This document shows, in pieces, positions 15,726 through 21,004 of a stretch of DNA of 64,000 bases. The stretch lies in sequence record PV764601.1, one strand, 5' to 3'. How positions within the stretch are numbered: the first letter of the stretch is position 1; every line of letters begins with the position of its first letter. The notes below the pieces were generated by a model. It saw nothing but the letters and a program-made list of their open reading frames with translations, did not search any database and was not told the DNA's origin. Position numbers and translations under genes: made by a program.

Positions 15726-16166
15726 ATGTCGAAGCAGATTTATACCGCCACCCTGTACGGGCCGGCCATCCGCACCATCGAAGGCACCGTGGTCGCGGAA
15801 GACGCGAATCAGATCACCGTCCACTACAAGCGCCCGCGTTCGTCCAAGTTTGAGCAGGCTGTCATCCCGCGCACCAACGTGCAGTACGCCGCTGTTGGTG
15901 AAGACGGTTCGGTGGAAATCGCGGTCGTGAATCCGCGTGCGGAACTGGCCAACATCAAGGTGGCACCGGACACCATCGAAGTGAAGGGCAACTTCACCAC
16001 GTTCGTGGCCGAGAACGGTGATACCTACGTCGTCGCCAACACGAACGTTTCGTTCGTGGGTGAGGCCGAAGAGGCTGCCAAGAAGAAGTCGAAGGGCGGC
16101 AAGGCTGAGAAGCCGGAGAAGGGCGAGAAGAAGAAGGGCAAGAAGGGCAAGAAGAAGGTCAAGTAA
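15726..16166 (+). CDS. hypothetical protein with poly-Lys tail
   Basis: GAGG SD; ends KGEKKKGKKGKKKVK. Confidence 0.75.
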   Translation: MSKQIYTATLYGPAIRTIEGTVVAEDANQITVHYKRPRSSKFEQAVIPRTNVQYAAVGEDGSVEIAVVNPRAELANIKVAPDTIEVKGNFTTFVAENGDTYVVANTNVSFVGEAEEAAKKKSKGGKAEKPEKGEKKKGKKGKKKVK

Positions 16167-16251: not shown

Positions 16252-16674
16252 ATGAACACCAATGAAAAGAACGTCCAGAACAACGAAGAAGCCACCAACG
16301 TCGCTGCCGAAGGTAGTGTCACCGTTGGAACCAATTCGGAAACCAGCACCGCGACTGATGGAAACGTCAGTGTCCCGGCAGCAGGTAGTGAAGGTCAGGC
16401 AGAAGCTACCGCAACTGCCAGTCCGACCACGGAAGTGACGGACGTTCCGGCGGAAGTGGCAGTCGCCACCTACACCGTGCAGGTCACTGGCAAGCTGACC
16501 GTCACCGGCTCCGCCGCCGCAGGCTCGACCGTGCGTTCGGCCATCAAGGCTGGCGGCGGTACTGGCTACGAGAACTTCAAGTATCAGGACGACAAGGGTA
16601 AGCCGGTTGCGCTTGACCGCAAGCTGTCGGAAAACCTCAAGCTGACCGCTATCGCCAAGGCGAGCGGCGGCTAA
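16252..16674 (+). CDS. Ubiquitin-like (beta-grasp) protein with C-terminal GG and a disordered N-terminal extension
   Basis: Ends AKASGG*; last ~68 aa follow the beta-beta-alpha-beta-beta pattern (YTVQV, GSTVRSAIKA, GKPVALDRKL, LKLTAI); lies upstream of E2- and E1-like genes. Confidence 0.75.
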   Translation: MNTNEKNVQNNEEATNVAAEGSVTVGTNSETSTATDGNVSVPAAGSEGQAEATATASPTTEVTDVPAEVAVATYTVQVTGKLTVTGSAAAGSTVRSAIKAGGGTGYENFKYQDDKGKPVALDRKLSENLKLTAIAKASGG

Positions 16675-16691
16675 AGCTACACGTACCACCT

Positions 16692-16725
16692 AGGCTCGGG
16701 CGTCGAAAGACGCTCGGGCCTTTCG
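16692..16725 (+). terminator. 13-bp GAAA-loop hairpin (attenuator or processing site) after the Ubl gene
   Basis: AGGCTCGGGCGTC-GAAA-GACGCTCGGGCCT followed by a short T run. Confidence 0.6.
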
Positions 16726-16753
16726 TACATTCAGGACTACCGAAAAGGCGACG

Positions 16754-19432
16754 ATGATGAGTAACGGAAGGTTCCCCAAAGCAGCAGCGAAGCAGAAGGT
16801 TGTTCAGTTGTGGGACTACTGCGATGATGACGAGTGCATGTGCTGCACCTCCGATTGCGACTGCGAGTGCCACGACACCGAGAACAGGTACTCTGAGAAC
16901 GTTCGGTGCCGAGATTGCTGCAAGGGTGTCTCTCTTGACGTAGCGGCCGAAGACGTGCCTTTGCTAGAAAGGCCCTACATCAAGGTGCAGGATACCGCCA
17001 CGCTTCGCGCCTGCATTCTTTTCATCGTGGACTCCCTGCGGGAGAACATGGCGACTTTGTTCCGTAATCGCCGCTCTCCTGAAATGCAGGAGATATTCTA
17101 CAAGTACCTCGGGATGGCTGTGCCAACAGTGGCTGCCTACCTCAAGGACTCCCCTGATCTATACCCAGCATTCAACCAGCCTGCTGTCATTCCTAGCTCT
17201 TGGGTGATTGCAAAGGAAGCGGCAGGCCATGAGCGCATCATGCCGAACACGGTTCGCTCTGCCTACATGTCGGGTTCTAACGCACACGAATACAATTCGG
17301 TAACTGAGTTCAGTACAGGTCACATCACGAACGACCTTGGCGTAGCCGCCCGAGCCATGACTGAGCAGTGCTTCGGTAACGACGTATTCCCCGTGCAAGA
17401 TTGCAAGTGGGATTTGATGGATTCCAACACGTTCCCTGACGTGTACCATGTGTGGGCGTTCTTCTTCATCTTGCTGTCCCAAGACCGTGCCCGCGACGAT
17501 GATCCGGACAACTACAAGTCCACCCGTGAGCAGGCGTTCGTGAATGGCAACACAGACTCCATTCCACTATACGAGATTGACTTCCGCAATCTGCAAAGCG
17601 CCTTGGCAAACGACGTGTTCAGTCGGCGGGCTGCAACAAGCCAAATTCATTTTAGCGTCGAACAGGTAATGATGAAGGAGGATCAAGTCCACATGTACGC
17701 GATGGCGTGCGTCGGACGCATGCCGCTGGTCATTCCTCTGGAGGCTATGGAGAACGAGACACAACTCATCAACTGGATGGAACGCCTCAGTTTCGACACA
17801 GGGCGCAGCCAGCGCGAGTTTGAGGCCGATCGTAAAGAACAAGAGCGTCGCATAGCAGTGCGCAGGACGTTCGGCTTCCAAGTGACAGAGCCTACACAAT
17901 ACAGGCTGTATGGACCCGCTCATATCGAGGGCATCCACTTCAATGTCACTCCTGAGACGAAAGCCAAGGCTGAATCCATGCTGGTCAACCTTGGATGGAA
18001 GGCCATCGCGGAAGTCTTCGATTCTGCGTTAGACCCATACGAGGATCGCTTCCTTGGTTACATATCGGGCTATCCTGACACACGTGACTTTCCCAGCCGC
18101 GTGATGAAGTGGGAACGCTTCCGTAAGGGCACCGCACCTACGGTGGTGCGGGTAGGTAATATCTTCCTGTCGGCTTCTCCTGCCCTCACGTATCATGCCC
18201 TGCTTAACTCGCTGACTACGGACGTTGTATCCACTCAGGATTCCTTGGTTACAGGGATTCAGATTAAGCGGGCGACGGCGCTCCTGCATGATTACGAGGA
18301 CGTGGAACGGGACTTGACGGAAACCACAAAGTCGCTGCTGGCTTTGCGTGCACGTAAGGCCGAGTTGCAGGAGCAGATTCGTCGCATCTGTTCTTTCACT
18401 GCGGAGGACGTGAACCTCGCGCTGGCAGAACTCAATAGCTACACGTGGATTGAGCATGTGGAGTTGCTGCCCTCGGGCACGGTCATCGTCCAAACGAATG
18501 ACCTGTACTACCAGCCGCCGGAAGTGTCAGGTTTTGACGATGAGGACGAAACGGATAACCGGGCGGTGCCAAGCCAGTTCTACATTGGCCAGTATCAGAT
18601 TGCACTGTCTCTAGTCAATACCGACCTCGCCATTCGCAACATTGCAGCACCGCTTGCCTACGAATTGGAATACTCTGAGCCCCGGCTGCGTATACGCATC
18701 CATCCACACATGGCTGTCCCGAGCAGCCAAGAGTCGCATGGCTCCCTGTGCTTAGGTTCGTTCCATAGCGAGTTGGAAGATCACATTTCCACCGCTTCCA
18801 ATTCGGTTGTAGGTAACTTGCGTTACAGGTTGCAGCTGCTTTACGACTTCTTGGCTACGCCGGATCGCAACGACCTGTACGTGAGGGCATGGGCCAAGAC
18901 GTATGGAGACAAGCCCGACGCTGAGTACATGGCGGTTTCTCCGTGGAAAGACCTCATCGGAAACATGGCGCCCTCCCTGTCACCAATTGGTACACGCAGG
19001 AGGTCGAAGGGTTCCCATCAAAACATGGGAGCATCAGGCTCGAAGTTGCTTGCGTTGAAGAGTCAGACTAGCAATCCGAAGTTCGACAACATCGTTGCAC
19101 AGGTGTCCAATGCGGAACTAGACTGGCACAGGATTCCTGTTACTCGGGAGACAGTGCTGAGGCTTGAAGAGTTGGTCCATGTAACCGAAGGTTATTTCAA
19201 GTTGAACAACATCAGCAACGAAAGTTGCCCCGGCTGTAACATGCTGCAACACAAGTGCGTATGTTGCAAACATGAGCCGAGCGAAGAATGTGGCTGTTGT
19301 GGTACGTGCAAGCGTACTCGGTGCAGTTGCTGCTCGGACTGTGAGTCCTCTCCCTGCAAGTGTTGCAACCGCTGCTTGTGCACTCCAGAAGATTGCGAGT
19401 GCGACGATGATATTGAGGATGATGAACTTTAA
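16754..19432 (+). CDS. Large multidomain protein with coiled coil, prokaryotic E2/UBC-like domain and Cys-rich termini
   Basis: HPH (aa 650-652)...GSLCLG (Cys666)...LYDFLATPDRNDLY is an E2-like signature; CxCC repeats at both ends. Confidence 0.65.
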   Translation: MMSNGRFPKAAAKQKVVQLWDYCDDDECMCCTSDCDCECHDTENRYSENVRCRDCCKGVSLDVAAEDVPLLERPYIKVQDTATLRACILFIVDSLRENMATLFRNRRSPEMQEIFYKYLGMAVPTVAAYLKDSPDLYPAFNQPAVIPSSWVIAKEAAGHERIMPNTVRSAYMSGSNAHEYNSVTEFSTGHITNDLGVAARAMTEQCFGNDVFPVQDCKWDLMDSNTFPDVYHVWAFFFILLSQDRARDDDPDNYKSTREQAFVNGNTDSIPLYEIDFRNLQSALANDVFSRRAATSQIHFSVEQVMMKEDQVHMYAMACVGRMPLVIPLEAMENETQLINWMERLSFDTGRSQREFEADRKEQERRIAVRRTFGFQVTEPTQYRLYGPAHIEGIHFNVTPETKAKAESMLVNLGWKAIAEVFDSALDPYEDRFLGYISGYPDTRDFPSRVMKWERFRKGTAPTVVRVGNIFLSASPALTYHALLNSLTTDVVSTQDSLVTGIQIKRATALLHDYEDVERDLTETTKSLLALRARKAELQEQIRRICSFTAEDVNLALAELNSYTWIEHVELLPSGTVIVQTNDLYYQPPEVSGFDDEDETDNRAVPSQFYIGQYQIALSLVNTDLAIRNIAAPLAYELEYSEPRLRIRIHPHMAVPSSQESHGSLCLGSFHSELEDHISTASNSVVGNLRYRLQLLYDFLATPDRNDLYVRAWAKTYGDKPDAEYMAVSPWKDLIGNMAPSLSPIGTRRRSKGSHQNMGASGSKLLALKSQTSNPKFDNIVAQVSNAELDWHRIPVTRETVLRLEELVHVTEGYFKLNNISNESCPGCNMLQHKCVCCKHEPSEECGCCGTCKRTRCSCCSDCESSPCKCCNRCLCTPEDCECDDDIEDDEL

Positions 19433-19444
19433 GGAGCACTAACG

Positions 19445-20128
19445 ATGGATCAAATTCGATTGACCGGTATCTTCGACCTGAGCAAGAGTAAGGCCACTGA
19501 GCGCACGCCTGCGGTGGTTGTCGGGGCAGGGGCCTTGGGCAGCGCGGTAGCGTTGCAGTTGTCAAAGATCGGTGTACCGTTCGTTGTCTATGATGATGAC
19601 GTGGTGGAATCCCACAACCTGCCGAACCAATGCCTGTACGGTCCCGATGACGTGGGGACGAACAAGGCTGTTGCCTTGGTGGATCGCCTGCGTCAAGTTT
19701 CGGACACGCGAGTGGGCGCGTGTCCTCGCCGCCTCAATAAGCCCAGGTTTGAGGCCACTCCATATGTGTTCGTATGCGTGGACAACATGGCATCGCGCCG
19801 TGCCTTCGCGGAGAACTACTTGCCGTGTGAGGGTGGTGCGTTTCTGGATGGACGCATGGGAGCCCGGGATGCAATCTCGTTCCTGCTTGATCGCAGCAAG
19901 GAATGGCAACGCACTAATTACATTGGTGGCCTGTTCGATGACGACGACGCCAATGTAGAACGCGCGGCTTGTGGGGCAACCCTCAGTGTCGGAGCTACGG
20001 CGCAGATTGTCGCGTCACAGATGATCTGGCAGTTCATGAATTTCGTCATGGGCCGCCCGACACCTAACACGGTGGTGACAAGCGTGGGTGAAGAATGGGG
20101 AATGCACAGCGTAACATGGCAGGAGTAA
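19445..20128 (+). CDS. ThiF/MoeB/E1-family adenylyltransferase
   Basis: VVGAGALGS, DDDVVESHNLPNQ, GTNKA, CVDN, DGRMG and candidate catalytic Cys176 (ERAACGA). Confidence 0.9.
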   Translation: MDQIRLTGIFDLSKSKATERTPAVVVGAGALGSAVALQLSKIGVPFVVYDDDVVESHNLPNQCLYGPDDVGTNKAVALVDRLRQVSDTRVGACPRRLNKPRFEATPYVFVCVDNMASRRAFAENYLPCEGGAFLDGRMGARDAISFLLDRSKEWQRTNYIGGLFDDDDANVERAACGATLSVGATAQIVASQMIWQFMNFVMGRPTPNTVVTSVGEEWGMHSVTWQE

Positions 20129-20307
20129 CATGGGAGATTGTCACCGAACAGGTGGCGCCGCACAACGGCAAGAGCTACGTCATCAAGAAGCGTGACGTAG
20201 ACGGCCGAACAGAGTACCAGCTGTGGGTCAACAAGCTGCTGATGGAGCAGACGTTCGACACCGACAAGCTGCGTGAACGCATTGAGCACACTGCACAACT
20301 ACGATAA
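20116..20307 (+). CDS. hypothetical protein
   Basis: Small ORF overlapping the E1 stop. Confidence 0.5.
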   Translation: MAGVTWEIVTEQVAPHNGKSYVIKKRDVDGRTEYQLWVNKLLMEQTFDTDKLRERIEHTAQLR

Positions 20308-20317
20308 AGGAATTGAA

Positions 20318-21004
20318 ATGCTCGTTACTCCGAAGCTCATCACCTATACCGCCGAATGGTTGCATGGTCTGCGTGACCAGTACCCCATCGGTGCCAATCC
20401 CCACAACGAAAGTTTCCATGAGCATCTGGATCAGTTCCAGAAGCTGGAGGATGGTTCCTACCGTGCCCCATTCGTGTACGAGCACGCAACGCTGCCGGGT
20501 GTGTTCACGGGCGACCTCAACTTCGATCATGAAATCAACCGCTCCAAGCAGGACGGCAAGCGCAAGTTCGATCTTGACTATCCAGAGTTCCCTGAGCACA
20601 ACGCGGGCATCTACGACGACTTGGGCGAGGATGGCGAACCGAAGAAGCGCTACCTCAACTGCTATGGCGTAGTGGACACCCCGGAACAGCTGTTTGAACT
20701 GTTCCCCATTATCGACGCTCTGGAGAATCGGTACTTCTGCGTCAGCATGGTTGAAATGCGCAGGGACGAGCAGGAGCCGAATGGCGGTTGGCGCTGGCAC
20801 AAGTGGGGCGCGTACCTTGGTACCCGTGAACCGCAGTTCGAGTATCTCTATGACGAGACGGCGGAGAACCGTTCGGATGGCAAGGCCATCGACGCGGTGT
20901 GGGTGTACCATATCTACGAACTTGTGGAAGGGGATATGGTGCATCCCGTAATCGTGGAACGGCAGAAGTGGCTGCGTCGCCAGCAGGGGAACGCAGCGGA
21001 GTAA
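20318..21004 (+). CDS. conserved-looking phage hypothetical protein
   Basis: AAGGA SD; YGVVD and GGWRWHKWGAYLG motifs. Confidence 0.7.
   Translation: MLVTPKLITYTAEWLHGLRDQYPIGANPHNESFHEHLDQFQKLEDGSYRAPFVYEHATLPGVFTGDLNFDHEINRSKQDGKRKFDLDYPEFPEHNAGIYDDLGEDGEPKKRYLNCYGVVDTPEQLFELFPIIDALENRYFCVSMVEMRRDEQEPNGGWRWHKWGAYLGTREPQFEYLYDETAENRSDGKAIDAVWVYHIYELVEGDMVHPVIVERQKWLRRQQGNAAE

Follow-up and report, generated by a model that had tools for sequence, protein, structure and literature searches.

The gene at positions 16,754–19,432 of the window, by which we mean the whole stretch of 64,000 nucleotides (nt) analysed here from sequence record PV764601.1, encodes an 892-amino-acid (aa) protein, P0001. 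This protein probably acts as the conjugating enzyme (E2 type) in a cassette of three genes in the Xanthomonas jumbo phage PhiXhv-12, where it is accompanied by a candidate ubiquitin-like protein (Ubl) ending in Gly-Gly (GG) and by a short activating enzyme (E1) of the ThiF type. Two features make a conjugating role the best reading: a UBC/RWD-type domain in the protein, marked by an invariant Pro-His...Cys signature, and the conserved grouping of its gene with those of the E1 and the GG-ended protein. In GenBank the product (PhiXhv-12, 892 aa) is labelled “hypothetical protein”. The initial annotation had described an E2-like protein of unusual size with Cys-rich repeats at both ends, and the E2-like domain is borne out by the predicted UBC/RWD-type fold, the invariant motif and the company of an E1 and a GG-ended protein.

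Sequence conservation argues for an E2-like identity more strongly than the structural scores do. In a full-length alignment of eight members, which share 17–31% identity with the window protein, nine columns other than Met are invariant and eight of these lie inside the E2-like domain (G612, I616, R628, N629, P651, H652, C666 and W731), C666 being the sole invariant Cys. P651, H652 and C666 stand in 8/8 members, and the shorter relatives described below (n = 56) carry [NH]PH...C.G. In canonical E2s the motif is HPN-x7-C. The window protein has HPH at residues 650–652 and then C666 with a spacing of x13; across the family 2 to 13 residues separate HPH from the Cys, and HPH-x7-C occurs in three members. 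The conserved Cys after an HPN-type motif that marks the UBC/E2 superfamily is thereby present in an HPH variant, with Cys666 as the candidate catalytic residue.

The predicted fold is consistent with this assignment. The AlphaFold2 (AF2) model of aa 548–741 has a predicted local distance difference test score (pLDDT) of 75.7 and a predicted template modelling score (pTM) of 0.73, and its elements follow one another as helix, beta-meander, HPH loop, Cys and three helices; the full-length AF2 model was left out of the fold search because its mean pLDDT was 37. In a Foldseek search against the PDB the top list was almost purely composed of E2s. When the 970 Foldseek candidates were realigned with VIA-align, Z was at least 5 in 121 and nearly all of those listed were E2s, with 116–128 of ~150 residues aligned, among them UbcH7 (Z 6.4, 127/151 residues, root mean square deviation 4.2), UBE2S (6.3), Atg10 (6.2) and Cap2 (5.8). 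An unbiased VIA-align search of 48,161 representative chains returned the RWD domains of Knl1 (Z 6.5) and GCN2 (5.9) together with Ubc13 (5.8) and Ube2O (4.5), and nearly all of its top 50 were UBC, RWD or UEV domains. The uniformity of this list outweighs any single structural score, and on the model a UBC fold for aa 548–741, in which an N-terminal helix and a four-stranded antiparallel meander precede C-terminal helices, is moderately supported. As for RWD membership, which would call for a Pfam RWD match and the lack of a conserved catalytic Cys, PF05773 stays silent and the Cys is invariant. The best viral structural neighbour is a 1146-aa protein of an uncultured Caudovirales phage (BFVD A0A6J5NL39; Foldseek probability 1.00, TM score 0.43 query-normalised, 206 columns), which may be another giant member of the E2-like family.

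The second line of evidence is the cassette itself. A ThiF-type gene (220–244 aa) directly follows the E2-like gene in 9/9 long-form relatives, namely L007, L002, L003, L004, the contigs of P0007, L009, L011 and L013, and the three cassette genes are mutually orthologous (~45% identity for the E1, ~40% for the Ubl and ~25% for the E2-like protein). Orthologues of the candidate Ubl stand directly before the E2-like gene in L007, L002, L003 and L004, all of them GG-ended and sharing LDRKL, and in L013 a GG-ended small protein is placed after the E1; with the window, six lineages have such a neighbour. The modifier of L003 (5353–5910) is a tandem double Ubl with two LDRKL-type domains and a GG end, which recalls di-Ubls of the ISG15 or BilA type. 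No PDB or Pfam sequence match was found for the candidate Ubl. The E1 matches ThiF, Uba1, MoeB, Cap2 and BubCD in PDB profile searches; its GxGxxG, D50, D52, N58, N61, Q62, K74, D113, R118 and R137 are kept in 73–74 of the 74 aligned phage E1s, the exception being one alignment gap, and C111 and C176 are present in 74/74. Judged by these residues, the adenylation site is intact. The nucleotide-binding motif of the 74 phage E1s reads HNLxNQ with an invariant Asn, at the position where ThiF, MoeB and Uba1 have Arg (SNLxRQ). The PADLOC models for the Cap2 “E1-E2” and for BilD match only the adenylation core of the E1 (3.6e-12 to 7.8e-6). Beside the three genes, no other conserved neighbour and no separate ligase (E3) or JAB gene was found in the relatives.

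The pairing of an E2-like protein with such an E1 extends well beyond the long forms. At least 159 IMG/VR contigs carry an E1 of this type, and in 59 of the 80 loci examined an open reading frame (ORF) of 450–580 aa with [NH]PH-x5-C-x-G lies ~1 kb before it. The gene order in these 59 is a 75–79 aa protein, the E2-like protein, an unknown protein of ~310 aa and the short ThiF E1 (for example L026:2148–5612 and L014:1953–5678, among loci L014–L092), and this four-gene module has no Pfam or PHROG annotation. Compared with the giant by hhalign, the short forms align over the coiled coil and E2-like domain at 95.4% probability (E 1.9e-8, 198 columns) and, with the E2-like domain profile alone, at 92% (E 5e-7, 59 columns around the active site). 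The short forms are homologous to it on these profile comparisons, so the 892-aa protein is no orphan but the long version of a phage E2-like family that is widespread and lacks annotation. A fusion origin, in which the ~310-aa short-form protein would correspond to the N-terminal half of the giant, was rejected (hhalign probability 0.1%).

Several observations weigh against a conjugating enzyme and should be set beside this evidence. The domain model was built on a thin alignment of 7 homologous sequences, and its active-site loop (model residues 109–115) has a pLDDT below 50. The Foldseek matches are weak (E 0.04–0.3, TM scores 0.2–0.3), and all structural Z values are middling, below 8, a range that according to the VIA-align tool note may reflect only a common arrangement; the support for the fold is only moderate because of this. 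RWD domains, which are non-catalytic, score level with E2s, the two folds being indistinguishable at the resolution of the model. At the sequence level, the curated E2 models (Pfam UQ_con and Prok-E2, PADLOC BilB or Cap2, and NCBIfam) gave no match to the 892-aa protein, Pfam UQ_con and RWD (PF05773) found nothing in the phage genome at an E-value of 10, and a PDB profile search with the E2-like protein found no E2. In the cassettes, the 75–79 aa protein of the short-form loci ends in KADNA, KADSAF or similar and not in GG, and L009 and L011 have no GG-ended neighbour; these are the most distant long-form cassettes (L009:171–590 and L011:3601–4137), with no GG-ended protein before the E2-like gene. 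A Pfam Prok-JAB search of the phage found no deconjugating JAB. Finally, metal binding by the Cys-rich ends, discussed below, is what we infer from their composition.

The same cassette could also be read as a sulfur-carrier pathway, in which the E1 converts the GG-ended protein into a ThiS/MoaD-like thiocarboxylate, to be used in the thio-modification of, for example, a nucleoside or a cofactor, and the Cys-rich protein serves as a persulfide relay or an Fe-S/metal scaffold. ThiF and MoeB are the best matches of the E1, GenBank labels it “thiamine biosynthesis protein”, it is minimal, with neither a UFD nor a separate Cys domain, and the small protein shares its GG end with sulfur carriers. 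However, none of the cassettes has a conserved rhodanese, cysteine desulfurase or sulfurtransferase, and a UBC/RWD-type partner with an invariant Pro-His...Cys has no use in sulfur-carrier pathways. Moreover, the Cys-rich ends are missing from most family members, and the tandem double Ubl of L003 is a feature of protein modifiers. We consider this pathway unlikely.

If the giant is a conjugating enzyme, the E1 would adenylate the C-terminal Gly of the Ubl, which would pass as a thioester to Cys176 of the E1, or straight from the adenylate, to Cys666, and would then be transferred from Cys666 to a target. That the E2-like protein would bear such a Ubl thioester is suggested by the adjacency of its gene to those of the E1 and the GG-ended protein. 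Since no E3 is conserved nearby, we propose that target presentation falls to the N-terminal part and the coiled coil; the coiled coil and the ~540 residues that precede the UBC-type domain would most likely hold or choose the target, as in large E2/E3 hybrids. It is plausible that the protein selects its substrates with its own ~540-residue N-terminal part. UBE2O and BIRC6 carry a UBC domain within a large protein, after a coiled coil and substrate-binding regions, and act as E2 plus E3 in one protein; both are eukaryotic and without Cys-rich ends. The giant is like them in its embedded UBC domain and in the coiled coil before it, but only the UBC core matches (fungal Ube2O 9quf, Z 4.5). The Cys-rich ends, which probably bind metal, may in turn stabilise, tether or regulate the enzyme.

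These ends stand apart from the rest of the protein in composition. Of its 36 Cys, 10 lie in aa 23–56 and 20 in aa 825–883, leaving 6 across the 755 residues between (0.8%). CxCC occurs at 28, 835, 846, 857 and 868, and the four C-terminal units are spaced by exactly 11 residues. The counts given in the initial annotation (about 10 Cys in the first ~56 aa and 20 in the last ~70, with 11-residue repeats and an acidic tip) proved exact. The Cys maximum in all other stop-free frames of the 64-kb window is 10 per 60 aa, five of the six CxCC found in its six-frame translation fall in the 892-aa protein, and at least four equally spaced CxCC arose in 0.35% of 200,000 shuffles of the last 70 residues. 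The Cys composition of the ends is far outside chance. Recent expansion of a DNA repeat as the source of the CxCC units was ruled out, the four 33-nt units being only 30–58% identical to one another in nucleotides and Tandem Repeats Finder reporting no array there. Both Cys clusters are protein-identical between the window gene and that of phage Ep026, and none of the 34 variable sites seen in four environmental assemblies (0/34) falls inside either.

Among relatives the clusters are mostly missing. The nearest long form in this respect, L007 (29% overall identity to the window for the E2-like protein, 68% for the E1), has retained the N-terminal cluster of 10 Cys and one His in matching order (C57...C84), and its last 25 residues contain only 5 Cys. 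P0004 retains 8 N-terminal Cys as a partial cluster, and no N-terminal cluster was found in the other long-form relatives. The CxCC repeats are absent from all nine long-form relatives with the same gene order, and the short forms (n = 56) have at most 4–5 Cys in either terminal 80 aa. A tail rich in Asp and Glu is commoner than a Cys-rich end and occurs in 6/10 long-form members (window, L007, L003, L009, L011 and L013). The class II E2s Cdc34 and Rad6 have an acidic C-terminal tail that binds basic partners; the likeness is an analogy of composition only, since the tails are not alignable and that of PhiXhv is interleaved with Cys. From this distribution the CxCC repeats are specific to the PhiXhv clade and the N-terminal cluster is somewhat older, neither belonging to the family core. 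Because the Cys clusters are mostly missing from both long-form and short-form relatives, the ends are best regarded as a recent lineage-specific accessory that lies outside the substrate-selecting core and outside the core mechanism of the family.

As to what the ends do, they most likely fold around metal ions, and our first guess is that they form zinc-thiolate clusters like those of metallothioneins or CXC domains. Metallothioneins and the Zn3Cys9 clusters of CXC and pre-SET domains have 25–30% Cys in CxC, CC and CxxC spacing, no aromatics and few hydrophobics. The C-terminal stretch is of this composition, with high Cys in these spacings and, in aa 825–892, 20 Cys in 68 residues (29%) and no Phe, Trp or Tyr; unlike those proteins, it is appended to an enzyme, matches no such family, and repeats an 11-residue CxCC(xxC) unit that fits no recognised motif. 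Perhaps the tails have a function of their own, as a metal buffer (copper or zinc) of the metallothionein type, a redox sensor, or internal acceptor thiols taking the Ubl from Cys666. The metal-thiolate type of composition would suit such a role, as would a periodicity beyond chance and the constancy of the tails in all sampled copies. Nonetheless, no metallothionein family matches them, they are fused to an enzyme instead of standing free, and they occur in one clade only, hence their role cannot be general to the family; a separate function of this kind seems decidedly improbable.

The initial annotation had gone further and suggested a self-contained E2-E3 hybrid whose Zn-rich termini and unassigned N-terminal domain select substrates, which we take to mean termini acting as RING-type E3 modules. 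The E2-like, conjugating part of that proposal is supported; its RING-like ends fall away, leaving the termini as a lineage-specific accessory only. The ends are indeed very rich in Cys, CxxC and His are present (CPGC...H...C at 825–835), no E3 gene is conserved nearby and the N-terminal cluster is conserved in L007. On the other side, the isolated termini matched no RING, U-box, zinc-finger or metallothionein family in Pfam at an E-value of 10, and they have scarcely any hydrophobic residues from which to build the core of a C3HC4-type cross-brace (6/41 in aa 20–60 and 6/70 in aa 823–892). AF2 gives them no fold (pLDDT 25–36). The annotation had also pointed to the homologues as a check, and expected its idea to fail if they lacked the Cys-rich ends. 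The N-terminal cluster of L007 and the 8 Cys of P0004 were found, but CxCC was found in none and Cys-rich ends are missing altogether from most relatives, which is largely the outcome that it had named as refuting. There is only a slim chance that the ends are RING-type modules.

It is very unlikely that the domain is a non-catalytic UBC/RWD-type one within a coiled-coil and RWD scaffold, as in Knl1 or FANCL, that binds the E1, the Ubl or another partner, since the top RWD matches of the unbiased structural search, a weak Knl1_RWD_C hint and a Knl1-like placing of the RWD after a coiled coil are opposed by a Cys and preceding Pro-His that stay invariant at 17–31% identity and in the short forms, which is unexpected for a scaffold, and by strict adjacency to an E1 with an intact adenylation site.

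Compared with known systems, the cassette resembles Bil (BilABCD): each encodes an E1 and an E2 next to a Ubl with Gly at its C-terminus, and neither has an E3 (PMC10557695, PMC11601596). In Bil, the E2 has been proposed to pick targets itself (PMC10557695, PMC11601596). Yet Bil serves the host as an anti-phage defence, whereas the PhiXhv-12 cassette belongs to a phage. The E1 of Bil, BilD, has two domains, with a Zn site and a Cys domain that is mobile; that of the phage consists of one adenylation domain of 227 aa. A JAB peptidase is part of Bil, whose Ubl has to be processed, whereas the candidate Ubl of PhiXhv-12 is already GG-ended and no Prok-JAB accompanies it. BilB is a small protein with the motif CEHH, unlike the giant with its HPH...C, which the PADLOC BilB model does not match. 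By PADLOC models, the E2, E1 and JAB or other peptidase of a Bil, Bub or CBASS-type operon are not found as a set. With UbcH7, Ubc13, UbcH5 and the E2 domain of CBASS Cap2 the giant shares the same predicted fold (Z 5.7–6.4, 108–128 residues aligned), although Cap2 is fused to its own E1 and the giant is not. With canonical E2s in general it shares a His-Pro-x motif, Cys and helix in the same order, but its motif has His where HPN has Asn, its length is 892 aa against ~150 aa, and there is no match of sequence profiles.

To our knowledge, conjugation of Ubls in prokaryotes has so far been a bacterial weapon against phages (Bil, Bub and CBASS Cap2). Here it is a phage that carries the full set of parts, comprising a GG modifier, a minimal E1 and an E2-like enzyme of very large size, and the pairing of E2-like protein and E1 recurs on many contigs of uncultured large phages, none of these proteins having a family annotation. 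No description of a phage-encoded Ubl-E1-E2 cassette or of this E2-like family was found in the full-text literature, whose coverage leaves out most subscription journals, and the paper on the PhiXhv phages makes no mention of the cassette. If the cassette is active, phages would write a protein tag inside the infected cell, and this would raise questions about the targets, about counter-defence and about how a minimal E1-E2 relay works. Rather speculatively, large phages may possess an undescribed Ubl-conjugation machinery, built on an E2-like superfamily always paired with a minimal E1 on those IMG/VR contigs, that tags host or phage proteins, for example disarming defences or steering assembly, and the metal-thiolate ends of the PhiXhv clade may make the tagging responsive to metal or redox state. 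We hold this wider idea to be a doubtful one at present, and it is directly testable because PhiXhv-12 has been cultured with a tractable host. The Cys-rich ends are a smaller and separate curiosity, which would represent a rare metallothionein-like sequence fused to an enzyme.

The remainder of the protein is less readily assigned (Table 1). The initial annotation had left the N-terminal half unassigned, and it remains so, with no Pfam, PHROG or PDB match for that half or for aa 60–375, a region which is homologous across the family and has an AF2 confidence below 50. Aa 376–495 as an internal duplicate of the E2-like domain was ruled out by hhalign. The coiled coil placed by the annotation at about aa 510–545, before the E2-like domain, agrees with the long AF2 helix; weak Pfam matches in this area are DivIC (511–544) and Knl1_RWD_C (518–561, E 0.15).

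Table 1. Features of the E2-like gene and its cassette, in window coordinates
Feature	Position	Strand	Details
Candidate ubiquitin-like modifier, 140 aa	16252..16674	+	Low-complexity N-terminal half, then ~68-aa domain 16468-16671 ending ...LDRKLSENLKLTAIAKASGG-stop
E2-like protein P0001, 892 aa	16754..19432	+	ORF open; GenBank coding sequence XYR92829.1
N-terminal Cys cluster, aa 23-56	16820..16921	+	10 Cys and His40, Asp/Glu-rich
N-terminal region, aa 60-375, predicted mostly helical	16931..17878	+	FGxDxLP and YPSxxHxW blocks, invariant P324
Conserved region, aa 376-493	17879..18232	+	IEGIHFN (391-397), VVRVGxxFLSxSP (463-475)
Long helix / coiled coil, aa 494-546	18233..18391	+	AF2 helix 494-546
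UBC/RWD-type E2-like domain (predicted), aa 548-741	18395..18976	+	HPH 18701-18709 (aa 650-652); candidate catalytic Cys666 18749-18751
C-terminal Cys-rich stretch, aa 825-883	19226..19402	+	20 Cys; four 11-residue CxCC units 19256-19387; PhiXhv/Ep026 clade only
Acidic C-terminal tip DDDIEDDEL, last 9 residues	19403..19429	+	
Short ThiF-type E1 P0002, 227 aa	19445..20128	+	12 nt after the giant gene; Pfam ThiF 4.8e-21

With regard to distribution, the gene is 100% identical to that of PhiXhv-12 (PV764601.1, 227.6 kb), and its further carriers are only four near-identical phages (PhiXhv-15, PhiXhv-16, Ep026 and Ep032). Searched as the whole 892-aa protein, as five pieces and as family profiles, it gave nothing beyond chance in Pfam, PHROGs, PADLOC, NCBIfam or PDB sequence searches, and a word-index protein search with the protein or the family alignment as query returned no match except the 892-aa protein itself. 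An exhaustive phmmer search with the protein found only four distant relatives (E 1e-13 to 5e-6); additional ones were recovered by using the neighbouring E1 as a hook, and a scan of IMG/VR and JGI metagenomes with the family alignment yielded no confirmed relative. The gene is under purifying selection: compared with that of Ep026, it differs synonymously at 41 codons and non-synonymously at 10. The four environmental assemblies contain no indels, and their 34 variable sites are counted over the whole gene. Near-identical copies of 16252–20128 were found among the assembled contigs of 11 studies, RNA libraries included, from honey, freshwater, drinking water, wastewater and sediment, and the PhiXhv phage lineage is environmentally widespread because of this spread of copies. 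A single contig of 53 nt and depth 4 in run X9 skips 2415 nt by joining 16902 to 19318; it is most likely an assembly artefact, since its shorter side has only 23 letters.

Around the cassette, the gene at 15726–16166 (+), two genes before it, encodes a protein of 146 aa whose tail (...KKKSKGGKAEKPEKGEKKKGKKGKKKVK) is very rich in Lys; the gene is syntenic in L007, and no family matches the protein. After the E1 come a 243-aa protein at 20273–21004 (+), which matches phrog_12048/18298 (unknown function), and an overlapping 70-aa ORF at 20095–20307 (+); both probably lie outside the cassette, since they are conserved only in L007.

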